From Epithemia pelagica (taxonomy: Eukaryota; Protista; Bacillariophyta): a stretch of 64,000 nucleotides of DNA. Where the stretch lies: assembly GCA_946965045.2 (NCBI GenBank), contig OX337230.1, positions 248,001 through 312,000 of the forward strand. Reading direction: 5' to 3'. Below, piece after piece: positions 4,309 to 15,181 of the stretch; positions within the stretch are counted from its first letter, which is position 1; every line of letters starts with the position of its first letter. The position numbers were made by a program, and so were the translations under genes. The notes under the pieces are model-generated. The model searched no databases, was not told the origin of the DNA, and saw only the letters and a list, made by a program, of their open reading frames with translations.

Positions 4309-5946
4309 TTACGACGCCGTGGACACGGGTTGGGCGGCGAGAATGGTACCCGTCGTTTTGAGTGTAACGGCATAATGGACGTGTCCGGGATCGACGACGC
4401 GCCATTCGCAGGCGGTAATCCATTGAGCAATCAACATATGCAATTCCGTCAGGGCAAACAATTGACCTTTGCAATTGCGACGACCCAGGGAAAAACTCAT
4501 CCAGGCTTGTTTCATGGCCACCGTGGCCGTCGTCCAACGTTCCGGCAAAAAGGCGTCGGGTCGATCCGTGTACACGGCCGCATTGCGTTGAATGGAATAA
4601 AAGGGCATGAAACACAAACAGCCCAGAGGCAAGACATGACCTTGCGGCGTGGTCAAGGATCCATGGGTAAGGACGCGAATGGATCCACCGGCGGCGGCTG
4701 GATGCAAGCGCATGGATTCCTTGACCACGTGATGCAAATACGTGCAGTCTTTCCAAACGGCTGCACTGTTCTTGTTGTTGCTGTCGTCACGACAGCGCTG
4801 CAATTCGTGCCGCAATTTGGTTTGAATGTCGGGATGGCGGGCCAATTCCAGCATGGTCCACAGGGCGGTATAGCCGGACGTTTCAAAGCCCCCGGCCAAG
4901 TAGGCCACCAAATCAATGCATCGTTCGTCATCCGAGTCGTACCCTTCATCTTGCAAGACAAGCGATAAGAGACAATTGTCATTCACCTTGCTGCTGTTGT
5001 CCATCAATTGTTGTCGTTGTCGAAAGTCCTTCATCATGGTGCGGACTTGGTCTTGCAAGGCGCGCGTCGATTGCTGGGCCCGTCGTTTGTGGGCAAAGAG
5101 CCATGGCAGCCATTTGCGCAAGGGATTGCGTTGGGAATCGACAAAGACTTCTTGGTAGACCCACTTGATGGATTGGACACAAATTTGGAGATCGGACAGG
5201 GCCATGTCGGTATCAAAGGCCGTCTTGGTCATGATGCGAGCCATGAGCAATTGGAGTTGGTGCGAAATATCAATCAGAACCTCACCGCCGTTGTGGTCCT
5301 TATTGTTTTCCGAGTTGGTCGTCGTCGCCATCAAGCCGTGTTGTTGCATCCATTCGTCGAGACAGAGTTGCATGAGAGCATTGCCAGTTTGTTCCATGAA
5401 TTGGGGTCCCAAGGCGACGGAATGATTTTTGCGGGTATGTTTGTACCGGTCCCCTTCTTGGGTAAAAAAGTTGGGTCATCCAAAGGCGTCGGCAAACAAT
5501 GCGTAGGATTGGGACCATTTGAGCGACGCTGCATGTTCCAAGACTTGCCGGGCCACGACGGGATCGGCAATGGCCACCAAGATTTGGCCCGGTGGTGCCA
5601 AGGGCAATCGAACAATGGGACCCTTGTCGGTGCGCGAAATTTGCAACAAGTATTGGGGAAGTGTGGGCGAAAAGAATTGTTGCAAAACCTGCCCAAATCC
5701 CTCGTCGACCATGGGGGGCAATTGGGCCTCTTGTTCTCGTTTCCGAGCTAGTTTTTCGGACGACAGGGATTGCGACAAGGCACCAAACAACCCAATCGCC
5801 ACCAAGGCGGGCAACACAATGGTCAGAAATCCATTCCACGACGTGACTTCCTGGAGAGAGGTGGAGGAGGACGACGAAGACGAATTGTCATGGACCGAGA
5901 GTCCCAGAAAAGAGGATGACATGATGGACCACAAGAATAACGACAT
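4309..5946 (-). pseudogene. Cytochrome P450 with a single in-frame TGA at 5476-5478
   Basis: N-terminal TM anchor; reading continues in frame across the stop (ADAFG*PNFFTQEGDRYKHTRK); I-helix AGGFETS, ExxR (ESMR), PERW, heme motif FSLGRRNCKG. Confidence 0.85.
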
Positions 5947-6145
5947 GAAGATAAGGACGACGATCGGTTTCCAATGGGAAGGATGAGAGTGCTTTGCGAG
6001 CCTTTTGTGTGCTATACTATATTCCTCTCAAGACCTGAGCTTCTCCTCGTCCCAATGGCAACCTATAGTGGTGTAAAGCAGTCTGCGAGGACAGTTGTGG
6101 CGTCGTCCTTTCTCATCGTGGTTCAACCTTGCATGCCAAAAAAGC

Positions 6146-6165
6146 AAAAGAAAGTATGAGGCGAA
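6146..6165 (+). repeat. Target-site duplication, left copy (aaaagaaagtatgaggcgaa)
   Basis: Identical 20-mer at 13879-13898 on the other side of the retroelement. Confidence 0.92.
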
Positions 6166-6290
6166 AAAAAAAAAAATTACAGTCTATTTTAACGCTGCCG
6201 CACGTATCCGCTAGGATAACGCCGACCGACGCGCCGGGCCTCCGAGCTAACGAAGGCGAGGACTAACTGTAGAGCGAAACATGTAGCAAG

Positions 6291-9200
6291 TTAGGTGTGG
6301 TTGGCAGAGTGCAAGATGACAGGTCTCCAAGTATTGAGCCAGGAACGGAGAGCAACAGAAGTAGTATCGATGGAGAAGTGAGTATCAAGGGAATCGTAGA
6401 AAAGTGATTGATCACGGGGTAGAACGGTGTGGCGGATAGAATATAAGGCAGCAACTTCGCGTTGGGCCTGTGCATAGGCTGCGGTTTCACGGGAAGGAGA
6501 TGTAGAGCCATGGAGAGCTTCATTCCTGGTTTTCCATAGTTGATACATATGTACCCACATGAGCTTGATGGTACTAGTAACAAATCGTTGTCCAGAAATT
6601 GCTGATTCGGTAGTAGTTGAGGCGTAGGTGTCTTGTAGTGCGGACCATAGGAGTGCAAAACGGCCGAGAATTAGTTGATCTAGGCCAATGTTGAGTTGAG
6701 TGCGTTGAAGGGCGAAGTAAGGAGATGTTGTGGGTAGGGGAGATGGCTGAGTGGAAGAGAACCAGGAGTGGAGATACTCGGTGAGGAGAGTGCAGAGGGA
6801 CGGGTGAACGTGATGATCGTGCCAAAATTCTCGAAGATCATCAAGTAATGAGCCAAGCCAAGACCTGTTGGGACATCGAAGAAAATGGTCATGGTCTTCG
6901 TGTGTAGGTTGTGGACACGAGGGGCATTCGTCGCTGTAGTAGGTGGCATAACGTGCTTTCAGATGACCCAGGGGAAGCCATTGGTGAAGAAATTTAACCA
7001 CAAAATGACGCCTGGAAAAATTAGAGCGAACTGCAATACCGTGTGACTCCCAATCGATGGAATTGAACACATCAGAACTCCAATCGTGCTTGTTGCGTAG
7101 GTAATTGCGCAAGGTTGGTGCTGAGGCTAACGTACGGAGAATGGATCGGTAATTTGAATTTATCGTGCCAAAGGGGCCATGAAGAATAGCAGTTGCGCCC
7201 CCAATAAGAGGAGCTATCCGCGAGGAGATTGAAGGTGGATAAACGTACGACGATGCCAAATTGTCGGCTTCAACATTCAATTGGGCTGGTAGGGACAGAG
7301 TGGAGGGAGCAACATTATTATCTTGATGGCCTTTCACATGACAAAAAGACGGGACTTGTGGGAATTGTCTTACTGTAGAAGAAATAGACTGTTGGATGTC
7401 CCAGTCTGGGTTCATTGTTGAGTACGTGAAGTCATAGGACCACTCGAGACGTTTGTTGATAGTTTGAACCAGACTCTTGGAGTCTGTGTACACTGTGACC
7501 GAATCTGGTAAAGATTGCGAGTAAAATTCAAACAGGCGAAATAAGAATCGAAGTATGCTGAGGCAGCCATAACTTTCGGACCGAAAAGATGAAGTCCTAT
7601 AGCCAGGAGCAGGACCATTAAGACGAAAGAGACGAAGACCTTGAAGTGTACATCCGACACAGCCGAATGTGCCCCGGAATTGGGCCGCAGAGCCGTCGCT
7701 ACACAGGAGAAGTTGCAAATTGGTTTGAAACAGTTCGTGCTGTAGGGTATTGAGTGAGCAAAGAATTTCAAACCCGCGAAGAAGCTGTGATTCCCAATCC
7801 TCCAATTTCGAAATATGGCTAGACAAGTCGATTGCAGGCGCTTCTGGGGGTGTAATGGTTGCTGGTGACACTGGGAGAAGAGTACGTCGCCCATTCTGAT
7901 GCACGCTTTGAGCAGGAAGACAGGTCGAAGGAAGCATGTTGACGAGCGATGCGGTGGTGACAAAGTAAGGACGTTGGTATACGAAACGCTCAAACTGATC
8001 ATCAATCTGGACATAGAGGGAGTAGTTTGTTGGATCCAGGTATTCATTCCACTGACGGTAAGTATCAAGACCTGTGACCAGCCATGCCCCAAGCGGTCGG
8101 TGGAGACGTTTCAGAGATCCCGAAACAGTAAAGCTCAGCAAAAGTCTTTTCCATATCGTCCACGCTTTGCGGCTCGGATTAGTTTGATAGGGCAATAAGC
8201 CTTTTGCTCTAGAGTGCGTGTCCCGAGAACAGTCGATCGCGAACAAGGACAGGTATTTTCCATCGACAGTCACAATGTCACTCATGAGAGTGACGCCCAA
8301 GTAGAGTCTGCATGCATTGACCAAACATAACTCAGTATCGTTGAAGTCCAGTGAGATGGCGTGGTCCATAAGGAAACTGTCACCTTGACGCTGCAGGGGA
8401 GGAACAAAGGTTGTTGTCAACTCGACGGTACACTTGATAGACGCCAAAAAGGATCGTACTTGAGGTATCCAGACCATTGGTTCCATATGAGGTAAGCGTA
8501 TATCCACGTGCTGTAGAATAGGCTTGCTAATCCCTGCCAAGAACTGTCCCCACGACACTGCAATCAAAGCGAGTTCTGAAGCTACTCCTTGGGATCTCAC
8601 ACATGCAAGGAAGAGATAGATTTGACTGATGCTCTTTTCGACTGATAGGTCTCGTAATGCAAGGCCGCCATATTCAGTAGGACCATATACAACTGCATTG
8701 GGAGTATTGCGATTAAACCCGTATCTTGGTAAGAAGACTTGTTTGAAAGGACGTTGTAAGGATTGACAGTTCGAATCAGACAAGGTTGAAGACGGGAAGG
8801 GGTATGTCATACTTGGTAAGTAGATTGAATGGTAATACGCCCAAGAATCAGTGCGGGTGAATGGACTGTTGGCCATTGTCCGAATATGAGCTTTGTTTTT
8901 CTTATCTAGCGCTGCGTAGAGTTCGGAATCCGTGCATTTGGGTGACTTTTGAACACCAAGAGTTTTGTGGCATGCGTAGGAGGAGAGTTGTCTAAGTTTC
9001 TGAGGTTGGTCCGTTCCGTGCAGGTGAATTGTAACATCAGGTCCGCACTGGCCATGTTGTAAGTTGGGTAGACCATCAATACTGAACGTGTAATGCATAA
9101 AATGATATGTGCATTTCTCAAGGTTGAGGGCACCTCCAGAGAGACTAAGCGTATCGTTCCAACGTTGAGCATCATGTGTGGCCTTGGAAATATAGGTATC

Positions 9201-12023
9201 CAATGGAGCTTGAGCAGGTAGAGCAAAATCATTTGTGCTTCCACTCGTATCGTCGACAAACCCTATCATGTAGAGTTGAGTCTTGAATTTTCTGCAAGGA
9301 GATTCGAATGTCGCCCCATACGCCTTTTCCTCGTAGACGTCGAAAAGCACACAGCTGATCACACACCAGATAGCTGGTGAGTTTCCTGCTCCTTGGCCCG
9401 AGCCATAGATTGGAAAAATCTGACAATGCTTGTAAAACCTTTCGGAAACACCCAATTTTGTTTTCAGGTAATATTTCGCTTCGGCCAAATTCCGAGCATT
9501 GATGAAAGTGATAGAACGGTGTTGTCCAGATGCTCGAGATGCAAGACTCCCGAAGTTCATCACTATACGGTCATAACATGCCGTAGCATCGTAGTCCATA
9601 TGGACTAAAGGTCGTTTGCTTGCCCTTGAAATCTCATATTGCATTTCTTCGATGAATGTAGGGATCACAGCATCTTTGCCGGGTACTCCACCAAACTGTG
9701 ACGGATTTAGGACTTGCTGATTGGAGCAGTTCGAAATCATCGTTCTCCCCTTGGTTGCCAAGACTAGATTGTAGTCTTGCTCGTATAGATGTATGACTCT
9801 CAACCGGTGGATTTTCAAGTTCCCCGGTTCTTTTAGAATCATAACATTTACGATGTGTTTCCAGCGTTCGTAGCAATAACCATTTACCAAGGCAACATTT
9901 AACAGTCCCACTTGCCAGTCAATCAAATCAGCTCTCTTTTCCTCTAGAGCTTCGAATTCGGTTGATTGTGGTTCTAGATCAGTCGGAGCTAACAGGACTT
10001 TACTGTGCCCGAGATGAAAGCCGGAGGGGGACGTGGTCGTGGATTCGGGCCATGCCTTAATCTTACCGATCCATTCCTCTTTTGTAAGACCTCCTGGCAC
10101 GCTGTCAAGATTGACGCGTGATTTCATATGATTTATCATCGATTGCGAAAGCTCGTCGATTTCTGGTGGTGCCCATGAGCCCTCTAAGATCAGTTCCGAA
10201 GTGTGACTGGATGCTCCCCAATCTACCCACTCAGAGAAAGGTGGAATTGTTGGGTAAGTGTTCTGCGCCTGTCCAAAATGTCGTTGATTGCGTTGAAGAA
10301 GCTTTGTCTCGATCTCTGAAGGAGTATCGATAGTTATCCATTCAGTACACGCGGCGTAGTCTTGGTCGTTGTCTTCAGCTGGTACATCAAGGCGAGTGAT
10401 ACCATTTTTTGTGGTTCCGCGGCATTTTCTGAGTTTATCGTACATTGCCTTGGTCCGTTCCGCTGCCATCCTGTGTTTGATTGCTTTGGAAGTTTTAGTA
10501 TCGCCTGATTTCTTTGCCTCTTCAAGAGCTAGTTTTAGTTCATTTTGTCTCCGAAAGACGGCTGTTTTGGTGATTTCAGTTATGCGTCGTTGGACAGCAC
10601 GTAACTGTGTTTGGCAATCATGAAGAGTATCAGGAATCAGAAAGGAGTGGCCATGGCGTGTTGTATGCATTAGTCCTGCGTCGAAATTGCGGTTCAACCT
10701 AATAGAAGAGATCACTTTCAAGAGAGTGTTCTTTTGGACTCGGAGGTCAGCAAGTTCACGCGAAAAGGGGATTGATCTTGGTTTCTTGGTGCAACGTTTG
10801 GCAGCGTACTTCCCTGCTCTTTGGAAATCCTTATCCAGTCGTTCCGCTAAGTCTTGATCCCAGTTATCTTTTAGTGACTGAAGTCTCATGCCAAAGTTGT
10901 GTCGCCGCAGAAAGTCGTGTTTAGATTCCATGTACTGACGGTTGGTACTTCGGTCTTTACTTGTAAATTCACGTGATGAGATCGGGCCGAGATTTGGTGT
11001 TTCGTTTCCAAACAATTGCACCACATCGAAGTCAATCACTATGTTCCGATGGTCTCCTCCTCTTCCACGCTTTTTGAACGGCTCGTAGCACCCAGTAAGA
11101 GCAGCTTGTGCTATTCCTGGGGTACAAAGTACGTAATCAATTCTTTCATGGCCAGAAACATGTGTGCCAAACTCCGTCATGCCAGTTAGTTGGAACATGA
11201 GATCAATCAACCCTCTGTCTGACTGTAGTTTTGACATGCCGGTCATAGAATCATTCAAAGCTTCGTTGAAGTCACCCATTACCAGTACTTCCGACTGTTG
11301 TGCTTGTCTATTTTCAATGAACTTGTTCAAATCTTCGACAAATGCGGCTCTCGGCGTGATATCGCGTCCTGCTTGGCGTAGTAAACTGATCTGTTGGACC
11401 GAGGCGGTGAAACTCCTTATGCGATTGTTTGTTGGGTCAACTATAGGTTGAGCGCAGACTTGGTATGCTGAGATGATCGTGATCGATTTCTGTCCTCTGC
11501 CAGACAAAACCTGGTAACTCCATCTTCCGAGCTTATCGCTGCCTTGAGAAACAACTCTTCCTGTGACGTGGCCTCCGGTTGCAAGTAGCGTGCCTCCTGG
11601 TTTGTAAAATGATCGACGTGGGGACGGAATAACACTGCTACTAAATACCAATCGGGAATGCTCAAAATGTTGTTGTATGGTGTTGAAGAGTGTTTCTTTG
11701 CATTTTGCATTTGTCGTATCCAATTTCGTCTCAAAAATTCCCCATGTGTCCGCCTCCAAATCATGTATTTCTTCGCAATATTCTGCGAAGTCTCCTCCTT
11801 TCTCGTCCAGGGTAAATCCGTTGGGGTTACAGCCGAAAATCCTGTAAATATCTCTTGTTTTTGTTGGTGGTGGTGTGCCTATATATTCGTTGTGTGCGTA
11901 GTTGAGTGCTGTCGTATCGTCGAGTGCGTCGAAAAATTCATGTGATTGAGAATGGTCGGTGTAGGTTGTAGTTGTTTCATCTAAGTAATCAGTGGAATGG
12001 TTGTTTCTAGCGGTACTAACCAT
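6291..12023 (-). CDS. ORF2 polyprotein: APE endonuclease, reverse transcriptase, RNase H, C-terminal Cys/His motif (1910 aa)
   Basis: APE: GCNPNG, FETKL, MGDFNE, RIDYVL, GDHR. RT: LRVIHLYE, DYDATACYDRI, GSGQGAGNSP, GFVDD. RNase H: CSDGS, RSESYG, YTDSKS, HVKGHQD, ADNLA. CPSC..HEDHDHFLRCP. Confidence 0.95.
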   Translation of the reverse strand: MVSTARNNHSTDYLDETTTTYTDHSQSHEFFDALDDTTALNYAHNEYIGTPPPTKTRDIYRIFGCNPNGFTLDEKGGDFAEYCEEIHDLEADTWGIFETKLDTTNAKCKETLFNTIQQHFEHSRLVFSSSVIPSPRRSFYKPGGTLLATGGHVTGRVVSQGSDKLGRWSYQVLSGRGQKSITIISAYQVCAQPIVDPTNNRIRSFTASVQQISLLRQAGRDITPRAAFVEDLNKFIENRQAQQSEVLVMGDFNEALNDSMTGMSKLQSDRGLIDLMFQLTGMTEFGTHVSGHERIDYVLCTPGIAQAALTGCYEPFKKRGRGGDHRNIVIDFDVVQLFGNETPNLGPISSREFTSKDRSTNRQYMESKHDFLRRHNFGMRLQSLKDNWDQDLAERLDKDFQRAGKYAAKRCTKKPRSIPFSRELADLRVQKNTLLKVISSIRLNRNFDAGLMHTTRHGHSFLIPDTLHDCQTQLRAVQRRITEITKTAVFRRQNELKLALEEAKKSGDTKTSKAIKHRMAAERTKAMYDKLRKCRGTTKNGITRLDVPAEDNDQDYAACTEWITIDTPSEIETKLLQRNQRHFGQAQNTYPTIPPFSEWVDWGASSHTSELILEGSWAPPEIDELSQSMINHMKSRVNLDSVPGGLTKEEWIGKIKAWPESTTTSPSGFHLGHSKVLLAPTDLEPQSTEFEALEEKRADLIDWQVGLLNVALVNGYCYERWKHIVNVMILKEPGNLKIHRLRVIHLYEQDYNLVLATKGRTMISNCSNQQVLNPSQFGGVPGKDAVIPTFIEEMQYEISRASKRPLVHMDYDATACYDRIVMNFGSLASRASGQHRSITFINARNLAEAKYYLKTKLGVSERFYKHCQIFPIYGSGQGAGNSPAIWCVISCVLFDVYEEKAYGATFESPCRKFKTQLYMIGFVDDTSGSTNDFALPAQAPLDTYISKATHDAQRWNDTLSLSGGALNLEKCTYHFMHYTFSIDGLPNLQHGQCGPDVTIHLHGTDQPQKLRQLSSYACHKTLGVQKSPKCTDSELYAALDKKNKAHIRTMANSPFTRTDSWAYYHSIYLPSMTYPFPSSTLSDSNCQSLQRPFKQVFLPRYGFNRNTPNAVVYGPTEYGGLALRDLSVEKSISQIYLFLACVRSQGVASELALIAVSWGQFLAGISKPILQHVDIRLPHMEPMVWIPQVRSFLASIKCTVELTTTFVPPLQRQGDSFLMDHAISLDFNDTELCLVNACRLYLGVTLMSDIVTVDGKYLSLFAIDCSRDTHSRAKGLLPYQTNPSRKAWTIWKRLLLSFTVSGSLKRLHRPLGAWLVTGLDTYRQWNEYLDPTNYSLYVQIDDQFERFVYQRPYFVTTASLVNMLPSTCLPAQSVHQNGRRTLLPVSPATITPPEAPAIDLSSHISKLEDWESQLLRGFEILCSLNTLQHELFQTNLQLLLCSDGSAAQFRGTFGCVGCTLQGLRLFRLNGPAPGYRTSSFRSESYGCLSILRFLFRLFEFYSQSLPDSVTVYTDSKSLVQTINKRLEWSYDFTYSTMNPDWDIQQSISSTVRQFPQVPSFCHVKGHQDNNVAPSTLSLPAQLNVEADNLASSYVYPPSISSRIAPLIGGATAILHGPFGTINSNYRSILRTLASAPTLRNYLRNKHDWSSDVFNSIDWESHGIAVRSNFSRRHFVVKFLHQWLPLGHLKARYATYYSDECPSCPQPTHEDHDHFLRCPNRSWLGSLLDDLREFWHDHHVHPSLCTLLTEYLHSWFSSTQPSPLPTTSPYFALQRTQLNIGLDQLILGRFALLWSALQDTYASTTTESAISGQRFVTSTIKLMWVHMYQLWKTRNEALHGSTSPSRETAAYAQAQREVAALYSIRHTVLPRDQSLFYDSLDTHFSIDTTSVALRSWLNTWRPVILHSANHT

Positions 12024-13749
12024 GAGAGGTAAAGCTTCCCTCGTTGGTCATGCTAACATCCGCATTCTCGCTGGATGTTCGTTCATGTACCATGCTCACA
12101 TCGGTGGACACCCGTTGAGCTGTCATCGCGGAGTCTCCAGCGTCACCTTCCTTTGAGGTTTTACGCGCTGCGCTGCTCCCGTCGTAATGTGGACGCTTGT
12201 TCGTAACTGTTGTTGGATCATCGTTCGTCGAGGCTTGAGTTGTGGCAGATTGGTGCTCGTCCTTCTCGGCTCTCATCGCTTCTCGTACTATCAATGCAAT
12301 GCGAGCATCGTCATTGGATTGTTTCGTCATAAGCATCTCAAACTTCTCTTTCAGACTCATCAATTCGTTTTCTAGGCGCTCGTTGCGCGTACGAAGTTTG
12401 TCGTAATCTTCTTGTGTGATCTGGCTCCCAGTATCAGTAGTGACGACTGTTTTTGTTTCAACTACTGTGGGAATTTGGACATGCGCTGTAGACCACGCTT
12501 GCATCACGGGAGTAGAGGTTGCAGGCGGCAGATCGTAGGTGCCGTTGACTCCTGAATTAGACTTGTTTGTGTAGAGGGTAGAGCATGCGGTGACGTATGA
12601 TTGAAATGATTTTGCTTCACTATCTTCGTGTTCTTCGTCAGGTCCAAGCATTGGGATCTCACTGCGGAAGCAAAGTCTTGGGGTAGACACGTGAAGTTCG
12701 GACACGTCAATATTTTCGCGCTGTACTGCTTCTTCTGTCCAAGCGGCTAAATTAGCACGAACAATACGAACCACTTCATCGAAGTTTCGCTCAGTTGTAT
12801 GAATACTATAACGTCCTCGGGTGGCCCATTTCTTGTGTTTCGCAATGATACCAACTCCTGGAATCTGGCGTAGTTTCAATTCCACGTAAAACATTGCTTG
12901 GTGATGGACTCCTTCGATTGGGACAATTCGACTGCGGCTGAGAAACAAGTTCTGACGAATGATTGATTTCTTGTACGTGTCAGCTCCTTCTTTAGTGTGC
13001 CTCATCTTGTGAAAGATGAACCGAGGATTCTTTGCATAAGTCTTCATCAAGATACCAATCATGGTTTTGGCATCAGCTTGTCGACACTGTAAGTCGTAGG
13101 CTTTGGTCGAGAGTCGATTGTTCTCGGTGGTATAAGTAAACGGTGAAGAAAAGTTACACTTGAACTCTGGAACCTTTCCAAGGGGGATGTTAGCTTTCGT
13201 GATGTCATCTTGAATGGGCTTGATCATTTCCTCATTGATGACGTTCGATGCATCGGTGCCAACAAAGAATCCCAAGTTAGAGACATTGAGATCATCTTCA
13301 GACCATGGGTGAATGGTCATCCTTCCTTTAGTAATTAGCAGTTGATCTGAGACATCGGTGTGTCGGCGAATCTCACTTAGAGATATGCGAGAACGAAAGC
13401 GGTGAATCGCGACGTAAATCGGGTTCCTCTGTTTCAATTCGTTTCCTTTCGAGTAATGTAACTTAAAGTTACGCAGATAGTCATTGTATGACATCAATTT
13501 CTTGAATGCTTTCTTCGACTGGCCGTAGTTATTGAAAATCTCAATCTCTGGAAATACCTTCATGATCACATGAAGAGTATCGTAGTGAGACTTAGCAACG
13601 TTGATGTTTGCTTTCGGAGACGGACGGAAGAGGAACTTAACCACAAATTCCTTCTCTTCACCTTCGTACGAGATAAATTGATTCTTCGTATTAGGAGTTG
13701 AAGTGCTAACATCGTCTAGAGACATGCCGTTAGGAGAGCTTTCCGCCAT
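12016..13749 (-). CDS. Retrotransposon ORF1 protein (577 aa, coiled-coil region near C-terminus)
   Basis: Uninterrupted ORF upstream of and overlapping ORF2 by 8 nt; heptad-like YDKLRTRNERLENELMSLKEKF. Confidence 0.85.
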   Translation of the reverse strand: MAESSPNGMSLDDVSTSTPNTKNQFISYEGEEKEFVVKFLFRPSPKANINVAKSHYDTLHVIMKVFPEIEIFNNYGQSKKAFKKLMSYNDYLRNFKLHYSKGNELKQRNPIYVAIHRFRSRISLSEIRRHTDVSDQLLITKGRMTIHPWSEDDLNVSNLGFFVGTDASNVINEEMIKPIQDDITKANIPLGKVPEFKCNFSSPFTYTTENNRLSTKAYDLQCRQADAKTMIGILMKTYAKNPRFIFHKMRHTKEGADTYKKSIIRQNLFLSRSRIVPIEGVHHQAMFYVELKLRQIPGVGIIAKHKKWATRGRYSIHTTERNFDEVVRIVRANLAAWTEEAVQRENIDVSELHVSTPRLCFRSEIPMLGPDEEHEDSEAKSFQSYVTACSTLYTNKSNSGVNGTYDLPPATSTPVMQAWSTAHVQIPTVVETKTVVTTDTGSQITQEDYDKLRTRNERLENELMSLKEKFEMLMTKQSNDDARIALIVREAMRAEKDEHQSATTQASTNDDPTTVTNKRPHYDGSSAARKTSKEGDAGDSAMTAQRVSTDVSMVHERTSSENADVSMTNEGSFTSHG

Positions 13750-13878
13750 GGTGGAGAGCCACTCTTTCGGTCACAAGGAGGGCTACGGTAGGGCCGGTAC
13801 TAAGAGTACTGGATGGGCCTGATTCTCTTACACAACAGAAAATTAGAGTCTTTCTGTTTTGCTCGACCAGAGAATTAT

Positions 13879-13898
13879 AAAAGAAAGTATGAGGCGAA
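13879..13898 (+). repeat. Target-site duplication, right copy
   Basis: aaaagaaagtatgaggcgaa, identical to 6146-6165. Confidence 0.92.
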
Positions 13899-14424
13899 TA
13901 TCGTGACGTGGCATGAAACGCGATCGATCGACGATCGAAGGAGCTGCCCCCCGGGATAGAAAGGGCCCCCCCAAGAAAACCCCAAAGACCTTGGTGATGT
14001 CACGGGGATGACAGTCCCCCATCGCTCCCCAAAAATGTCGAATCTTTCAGGTACTACACATTATACTTCCTAGCACTGCGTTATGTTAATTGGGCGTATA
14101 CGCGAATTTTTCATAGTAGCTATCGCCGCTGAGGAGCATCACTGCAAAAGTGGTGCGGAGGAGACACAAACCTCGAACGTCGGTCTTTTTTTATATTCTT
14201 TTGGTGTGTCATTTTTTCAAGTTGTTTGTATGTTTGTTTGCTTGTTCTAAAAGAGAATTGACTGCGGAGAGATACCATCACTGTCTTTGTTCTCTCTTTG
14301 TGTCGCTGCTGCTGTTGGGGGTTGTGACCTCGTTTGACTTGTGTGCGTGAGACGAGAAATTCTTTGGGAGACAACCACCATCACCACCACCACAAGCTGG
14401 AGAGACTACTGCGAAACAACAAAC

Positions 14425-15181
14425 ATGTTGTCATCATCATCATCATCATCCCACGAACCCAACACTAGCAACAATGACGACAAGGTTCAATGGGAACCAC
14501 GAATCACAGACCATGGAACCGGAGCTACGAGTAGTACGAATACGGATCCATTGAGCGCAACATCCTCCTCCTCTTCGTCCGACACATCGGCCACAACGAC
14601 CACCACCACCCCATTAACTTCGCCTGCAACAACCTCGACCGTGACATGTCTCATTTGTTATGAAGACTATCCTCTCTATCATCCTCCTTCCACGACGACA
14701 CGGCTGAAACAACTGGAGGACCTGAGGATGAAAGAGGATGGGCCATCCAAACCTACCACCACGACCATGGCGGTCCAATTGCCGCAGTGCCATCACGTCT
14801 TTTGTCAAGACTGTCTGTCCTTGCATTGTCACTATATTTTGACATCGTACAATCCCTATCAACCCTTGGACCAAGTGGTGCCCCTTCCGTGTCCCTGTCG
14901 CACGGGTCACGACCCTCCGTGTCTCGAGTCCTGCTTGTCCTCTGATCTGGTTCACTGGGCTTTGCGAATTGGGACCAAACCATTCGAACAAACGGACCAG
15001 GACCAGGACGATGCACGTATAATGGTACCATCGTCCACCAACTCAACCATGGATTCAACTGAGGAGGAGGAGAAAGAGGTCCAAGCATTCGCACCCCATT
15101 CACAAGGCATCTTCCGACTCCCTTCTCACGACGACCCAACAACACAATCTCTGGTGGATTCGGGTTCCAGAACCACAACAA

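Follow-up and report, generated by a model that had tools for sequence, protein, structure and literature searches.

An oligo(T)-tailed LINE in the diatom Epithemia pelagica and the possible origin of its 3' end

The window (the whole analysed stretch of Epithemia pelagica DNA, 64,000 nucleotides of contig OX337230.1) contains an intact non-LTR retrotransposon of 7,713 bp (positions 6166–13878, minus strand) flanked by perfect target site duplications (TSDs) of 20 bp. The duplicated sequence, AAAAGAAAGTATGAGGCGAA, forms a direct repeat without mismatch (6146–6165 and 13879–13898). On the plus strand, its first copy is followed by A11 and then by TTACAGTC; the coding strand of the element terminates in ...GACTGTAA-T11, and since the adjoining TSD opens with TT, the run continues unbroken as T13. 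The second TSD copy, at the 5' side of the element, is followed by TATCGTG and no A's, so the empty site would read ...GGCGAA directly followed by TATCG, without an A-run. One contig from a public sequencing run confirms the junction of the element (window positions 5720–6207); the public contig-level data showed neither an empty allele nor a 3' end of the element RNA.

Both ORFs of the element are open and lie on the minus strand (Table 1). The preliminary description of this locus, with its minus-strand ORFs, 20-bp TSD, A11/T11 run and primer-side end ...gcgAA, was right in all details. Within ATGGTTAG (12016–12023, minus strand) the ORF1 stop (...CAT GGT TAG) overlaps the ORF2 start (ATG GTT AGT), a layout which suggests that translation of the two frames could be coupled by termination and reinitiation. 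A neighbouring plus-strand ORF, located just past the 5' end of the element, carries repeats of the histidine codons CAC/CAT (14374–14453 and 14593–14613).

Table 1. Features of the element and its flanks in the window (helices, unpaired stretch and domain limits are predicted).
Feature	Positions	Strand	Remarks
TSD, copy at element 3' end	6146..6165	.	Identical 20-mer at 13879–13898; primer side, bottom strand ends ...GGCGAA-3'
Oligo(T) tail (T11 coding strand, A11 plus strand)	6166..6176	-	T13 with the first 2 TSD bases; present in 39/39 other copies
Linker CTGTAA, subfamily-specific, between conserved motif and tail	6177..6182	-	Other subfamilies: CTGTACC, TTGTTCC, CTATAG etc.
3' motif GCGGCAGCGTTAAAATAGA, nearly invariant	6183..6201	-	5' half is the 3' arm of helix 2; AAAAUAGA predicted unpaired; invariant alignment columns
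3' UTR helix 2	6191..6235	-	17 pairs, 97.6% of cells paired, compensatory changes at 4 pairs; long lower stem invariant, upper stem covaries
3' UTR helix 1, short hairpin	6238..6257	-	6 pairs, compensatory changes at 4
ORF2, 1,910 aa	6291..12023	-	AP-endonuclease ~aa 60–340; RT ~660–1000; RNase H-like ~1440–1595; CCHC zinc knuckle ~1700–1717
ORF1, 577 aa	12016..13749	-	Overlaps ORF2 start within ATGGTTAG
5' UTR	13750..13878	-	Element begins ATAATTCTCTGG; 2 sister copies begin atATAATTC
TSD, copy at element 5' end	13879..13898	.	Then TATCGTG; implies empty site without A-run

The protein encoded by ORF2 is poorly recognized by existing profiles. A Pfam search with the window copy gave a weak match to Exo_endo_phos (E = 1.5e-4) and an RNase H match below threshold; no Pfam match was obtained for its RT region alone (RVT_1), nor for ORF1. 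Sequence searches against solved structures, performed with the single protein and with a 22-member profile, returned a weak endonuclease match only and no RT. The RT motifs DYDATACYD, GSGQG and FVDD are nevertheless readable in the ORF2 translation. The family is large: 233 relatives emerged when the RT region was used in a word-based search, almost all of them nameless in public protein sets. Among them are many metagenome contigs of 7–9 kb as well as proteins from the diatoms Epithemia clementina and Fragilaria crotonensis. When 22 relatives were aligned, the endonuclease, RT, RNase H-like (D/E/D/H/D) and CCHC residues were invariant, as were the motifs GDFNE, DHR, DYDATACYD, GSGQG and FVDD. 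Pfam recognized Exo_endo_phos in 20 of the 22 (best 2e-12), RVT_1 in 14 (best 1.7e-9) and zf-RVT in 4.

Judging from these conserved residues, the window element represents a genuine, very divergent LINE family with an AP-type endonuclease. The full-length element with endonuclease and RT that had been proposed at this locus is borne out by the two open ORFs between perfect TSDs and by the AP-endonuclease-like, RT and zinc-binding domains of the family. The proposed RNase H domain fared less well: the D/E/D/H/D columns of the relatives speak for it, and its Pfam match stays below threshold, so the designation RNase H-like is used here. As for the clade Ambal, it is named in the literature found only as a non-LTR clade added to Repbase after its 2009 classification.

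The T tail was followed through other copies in the same 60.5-Mb genome, in which the element's final 400 bases have 42 matches. The 19-mer GCGGCAGCGTTAAAATAGA, allowing at most one mismatch, has 132 genomic matches versus 0 for the reversed control. In total, 39 distinct copies were read (about 30% of the ~132 motif loci), belonging to subfamilies 64–99% identical to the window copy. All 39 show the same arrangement: the motif, a subfamily-specific linker of 5–13 nt, a run of T6–T34 (median 10) and then unique, unrelated flank. A T run of at least 6 at a comparable distance occurs at 0.5% of random window positions. A coding-strand poly(A) end, by which LINEs of the L1-like poly(A)-dependent class are defined, was found in 0 of the 39 copies and in none of the relatives examined, and no 3' transduction past the T run was seen in the 39. 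Almost all tails in this genome are pure T. Sibling copies 98–99% identical to the window copy carry runs of 8, 12, 13 and 16 T, and these variable lengths would fit slippage or variable start points.

The T tail is thus a hallmark of the element, neither target sequence nor a one-off slip, and the poly(T) in place of poly(A) reported from the single window copy proved general once the other copies had been tabulated. The reading in which the A-run was target-derived, or arose by a local replication slip at this single locus, starts from the fact that the duplication ends in AA, which could in principle have seeded growth of the run. Its probability is negligible, since the other duplication copy is followed by TATCG, and a T run stands at all 39 unrelated loci as well as in elements of Epithemia clementina and Fragilaria crotonensis; the preliminary description had likewise taken the run to belong to the element.

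A conserved RNA structure is predicted upstream of the tail. In an alignment of 34 distinct 3' ends, two helices have 97.3% of their cells paired, versus 32–47% when the partners are slid by 1–3 columns. Compensatory changes occur at 8 pairs, and 0 of 500 shuffles reach the observed covariation score. On the coding strand the order is helix 1, helix 2, unpaired AAAAUAGA, linker and T run. A conserved, covarying two-helix 3' UTR is therefore predicted to precede the tail, with a putative role in recognition of the template. In one subfamily copy (L045:239–369, minus strand) about 20 consecutive C's lie upstream of helix 1, where the 3' UTR is variable.

The direction of copying could be deduced from the insertions themselves. 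About 13 copies are bounded by exact duplications of 11–20 bp, with inserts collinear with the window element. Several of these are full length (7.7–8.4 kb), all starting with (TA)TAATT..., and the 5'-truncated ones start near reference positions 2028, ~2300, ~3050 or are shorter still; all of them keep the T tail. Because truncation at the 5' side leaves the tail in place, target-primed reverse transcription (TPRT) would proceed from the T-tail end, corresponding to a U-run in the sense RNA, in agreement with the earlier proposal. For the same reason we reject a template of antisense RNA bearing an ordinary poly(A): the A-run would then be the 5' end of the RNA, yet it is the T-tail end which 5'-truncated copies retain.

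The first bases of the duplications bear on the primer. They were scored in 13 duplications at the 5' junction, where no tail is present to confound them. Eight of the 13 open with T (binomial p = 0.0065) and four with TT (p = 0.008); those starting with T often lie in the context TA|TT, and the remaining five open with C, G or A. An A-ended primer is therefore favoured, via pairing or through endonuclease preference, and with 5/13 duplications lacking an initial T, pairing with such a primer is not required. The mirror-image priming proposed for this locus, in which an A-ending DNA primer anneals to a U tail, is supported by the excess of T and TT starts and weakened by the five duplications without T, so it stands as a preference and not as a rule.

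T-ended relatives were also found outside this genome. An element of Epithemia clementina (7.6 kb, 11-bp duplication) ends in GCGGCAGCGTTTAAAATAGATTGTTAG-T9; one of Fragilaria crotonensis, 41% identical in the RT region, has a diverged motif followed by T15, and an element from one further assembly ends in T17. A metagenome scan with a 17-nt motif yielded 120 matches, mostly chance or bacterial, with about 15 real relatives. Some marine metagenome relatives have an interrupted tail, T9-A-T4/5, which is shared by separate contigs and, where a tail is duplicated in tandem, by its two halves. Such a shared interruption speaks for copying of the tail from a template and against random addition, a conclusion drawn from metagenome relatives rather than from this genome. 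Contigs of relatives from Logan stop inside the conserved 3' UTR, short of the tail.

Sister lineages from marine metagenomes end differently. One (L056–L057) terminates in ...ATTCA(GTTA)3-4, another (L058/L070/L115/L116/L120) in ...ACTATTTTC, and a third (L052–L055) in ...TTTAACC with 0–4 additional C, tentatively, as these C's may be target bases. A quick, midpoint-rooted maximum-likelihood tree, from a careful search not carried to completion, does not unite the T-tailed lineages: Fragilaria stands apart, with non-T lineages between. This scatter, together with the differing ends, suggests that tails evolve within the family, as do the simple-repeat tails of other LINEs.

The closest functional parallel is the eel LINE UnaL2, in which a 3' stem-loop is recognized by the element's protein and reverse transcription starts in the 3'-terminal repeat, telomerase-like slippage varying the number of repeats (PMC1636434). 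In UnaL2 and the stringent-type L2/CR1-like LINEs a conserved 3' stem-loop adjoins a short terminal repeat, as the predicted covarying structure adjoins a variable tail in the window family. The variable 3' repeat typical of the stringent type corresponds here to 6–34 T over 39 copies (8–16 in the 98–99% identical siblings) and to the (GTTA)3-4 of a sister lineage, a (GTTA)n tail being itself a likeness to UnaL2. Unlike in UnaL2, the repeat unit of the window family is a single U, forming a homopolymer which mirrors poly(A), and slippage is presumed here. The proteins are only remotely related, the window ORF2 containing an RNase H-like domain and matching no solved RT in sequence searches.

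With human and other mammalian L1 the family shares two ORFs, an AP-type endonuclease and RT, TPRT, a homopolymer tail, frequent 5' truncation (here with 11–20-bp duplications) and a bias in the nick site towards DNA ends able to pair with the tail. In contrast to L1, the tail is T, not A, which excludes ordinary polyadenylation as its source; primers ending in A/AA, rather than T-rich ones, are favoured, and a specific 3' structure, instead of the tail alone, seems to be needed for recognition. Among plant SINEs, Au SINE and p-SINE1 have T-rich or poly(T) 3' ends; these are transcribed by Pol III into short RNAs, with the T-run as terminator. Their DNA copies end in a T-run like those described here, but the window element is an autonomous, protein-coding LINE of 7.7 kb with many internal T runs on its coding strand.

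The following mechanism could account for these features. The element RNA would carry the two-helix 3' UTR, followed by single-stranded AAAAUAGA and linker and then by a U-run. The structured 3' UTR would be recognized by the element's RT in the stringent-type mode of eel UnaL2, and cDNA synthesis would begin within the U-run, at variable start points and/or with slippage, so that every new copy would end in a variable oligo(T) abutting the target. The T tail may then be a one-base-unit version of the simple-repeat tails of LINEs, comparable to (UGUAA)n in UnaL2 and (GTTA)n in the sister lineage. A nick leaving an A or AA DNA end would be favoured, not required, either by short pairing with the U-run or by an endonuclease preference for ...AA^TA. 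To judge by the shared ends of the copies, the U-run is probably the place where the enzyme starts copying. A stringent-type LINE of this kind, with a U-unit tail, recognition of the structured 3' UTR and an RT start in the U-run with slippage, is the reading which we consider probable. Taken as one claim with TPRT and a structure-recognized U-run template, the window copy would be a young, intact member of a diatom-specific LINE family, and this is held with moderate confidence.

Other origins of the tail differ from this reading in how the U-run is formed or used. A true mirror of L1 priming would involve an oligo(U)-ended RNA, either encoded and exposed by a dedicated 3' process or uridylated, to which an A-ended 3'-OH anneals after nicking at ...AA^TA. 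This appears unlikely, although if it were true, a 3' U-tail would license retrotransposition here, whereas in mammals it restricts L1. Alternatively, the RNA could end at the linker (...GACUGUAA/ACC) without any U-run, the RT using a terminal-transferase activity to add untemplated A's to the nicked DNA 3' end before jumping onto the end of the RNA. The T tail would in that case be a by-product of initiation, an origin which has been proposed for the variable short tails of R2 elements. Untemplated addition would suit tails which are almost always pure T, range from 6 to 34 and vary even among copies 98–99% identical, and it would need no pairing with a U-run, as in the five of 13 duplications without an initial T. 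However, it does not predict the excess of T and TT starts, unless endonuclease preference alone is responsible; the interrupted T9-A-T4/5 tails common to separate relatives and to tandem halves imply a template, and the 4-nt (GTTA)n tail of sister lineages cannot be untemplated. We therefore regard this alternative as doubtful.

A terminal uridylyl transferase could also append a U tail to the finished element RNA, which would then be reverse transcribed together with its tail. Variable pure T tails would be explained in this way without transcription ending in a T-run, and no result obtained here contradicts it. The run is, however, already encoded in each genomic copy, which makes an added tail unneeded, and the interrupted tails of the relatives point to an encoded one; uridylation is known, moreover, as a restriction on human L1 and not as a help. 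Such an origin is quite improbable. Transcription by Pol III with termination in the T-run would likewise leave an oligo(U) end, and the tail does sit exactly at the 3' end of the element. A T-run of at least 6 is a Pol III terminator. The 7.7-kb coding strand, however, contains 28 internal T runs of at least 4 (23 in shuffles) and 6 of at least 5; with no depletion of such runs the polymerase would stop early, and two long ORFs with a defined 5' end are typical of a Pol II mRNA. The Pol III-like termination suggested in the preliminary description was accordingly rejected and is given very little credence.

Most LINEs have tails of poly(A) or of short microsatellites, and conceptually the T tail may be viewed, by analogy, as one particular form of the simple-repeat tails already known. 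It is unusual in being the exact complement of canonical poly(A) and in its conservation across diatom genera. The searchable literature yielded no account of autonomous LINEs with an oligo(T) tail, nor of how Ambal elements end at their 3' side, an absence of little weight, as the string 'poly(T)' cannot be searched. The retention of an oligo(T) end by a protein-coding LINE clade in more than one genus of pennate diatoms would mean that the priming end of TPRT can be a U-run; one may then ask how a U-run comes to be the 3' end of a long transcript, presumably made by Pol II. The family could serve as a natural test system for separating tail–primer pairing from structure-based recognition of the template. 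Annotation which relies on a search for poly(A), or on an A tail for orientation, would mis-orient or miss these diatom LINEs.

Several related insertions were noted. At L016 (G000:C5, ~959.7–960.7 kb) lies an internally deleted, non-autonomous derivative of 988 bp with its own duplication (14–16 bp), composed of the first ~110 nt of the LINE, ~780 nt without LINE match, and the last ~100 nt with T8. A 16-copy repeat was entered by three LINE subfamilies at the same nucleotide, between ...GTCTTATT and CACCCCCACGGCGCGAGGGTCCAAAATTGG (occupied in L016, L011/L037 and L032; empty in L035:960–1220); one of these insertions is the 988-bp derivative and one is a tail fragment of ~70 nt without visible duplication. 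The shared nucleotide could be either a hot spot or a site preference. Tandem duplicates of the tail only (L038:9000–9100; G000:C11:2938295–2938393; L104, L164) consist of a full 3' end with T-run and, within 20–60 nt, a second, short tail fragment with its own T-run, an arrangement pointing to a template jump to another RNA end or to a further insertion beside the tail.

Pieces of the element were also met in environmental data. A biofilm metagenome (X7) contains pieces at ~99% identity, covering window positions 6218–6447 and 6539–6756, and a marine metatranscriptome (X9) contains two short pieces (6739–6899 and 7547–7614) at a depth of about 2. These pieces show that the species or a near relative is present in the environment, and those from the metatranscriptome give a faint hint of transcription of the element.
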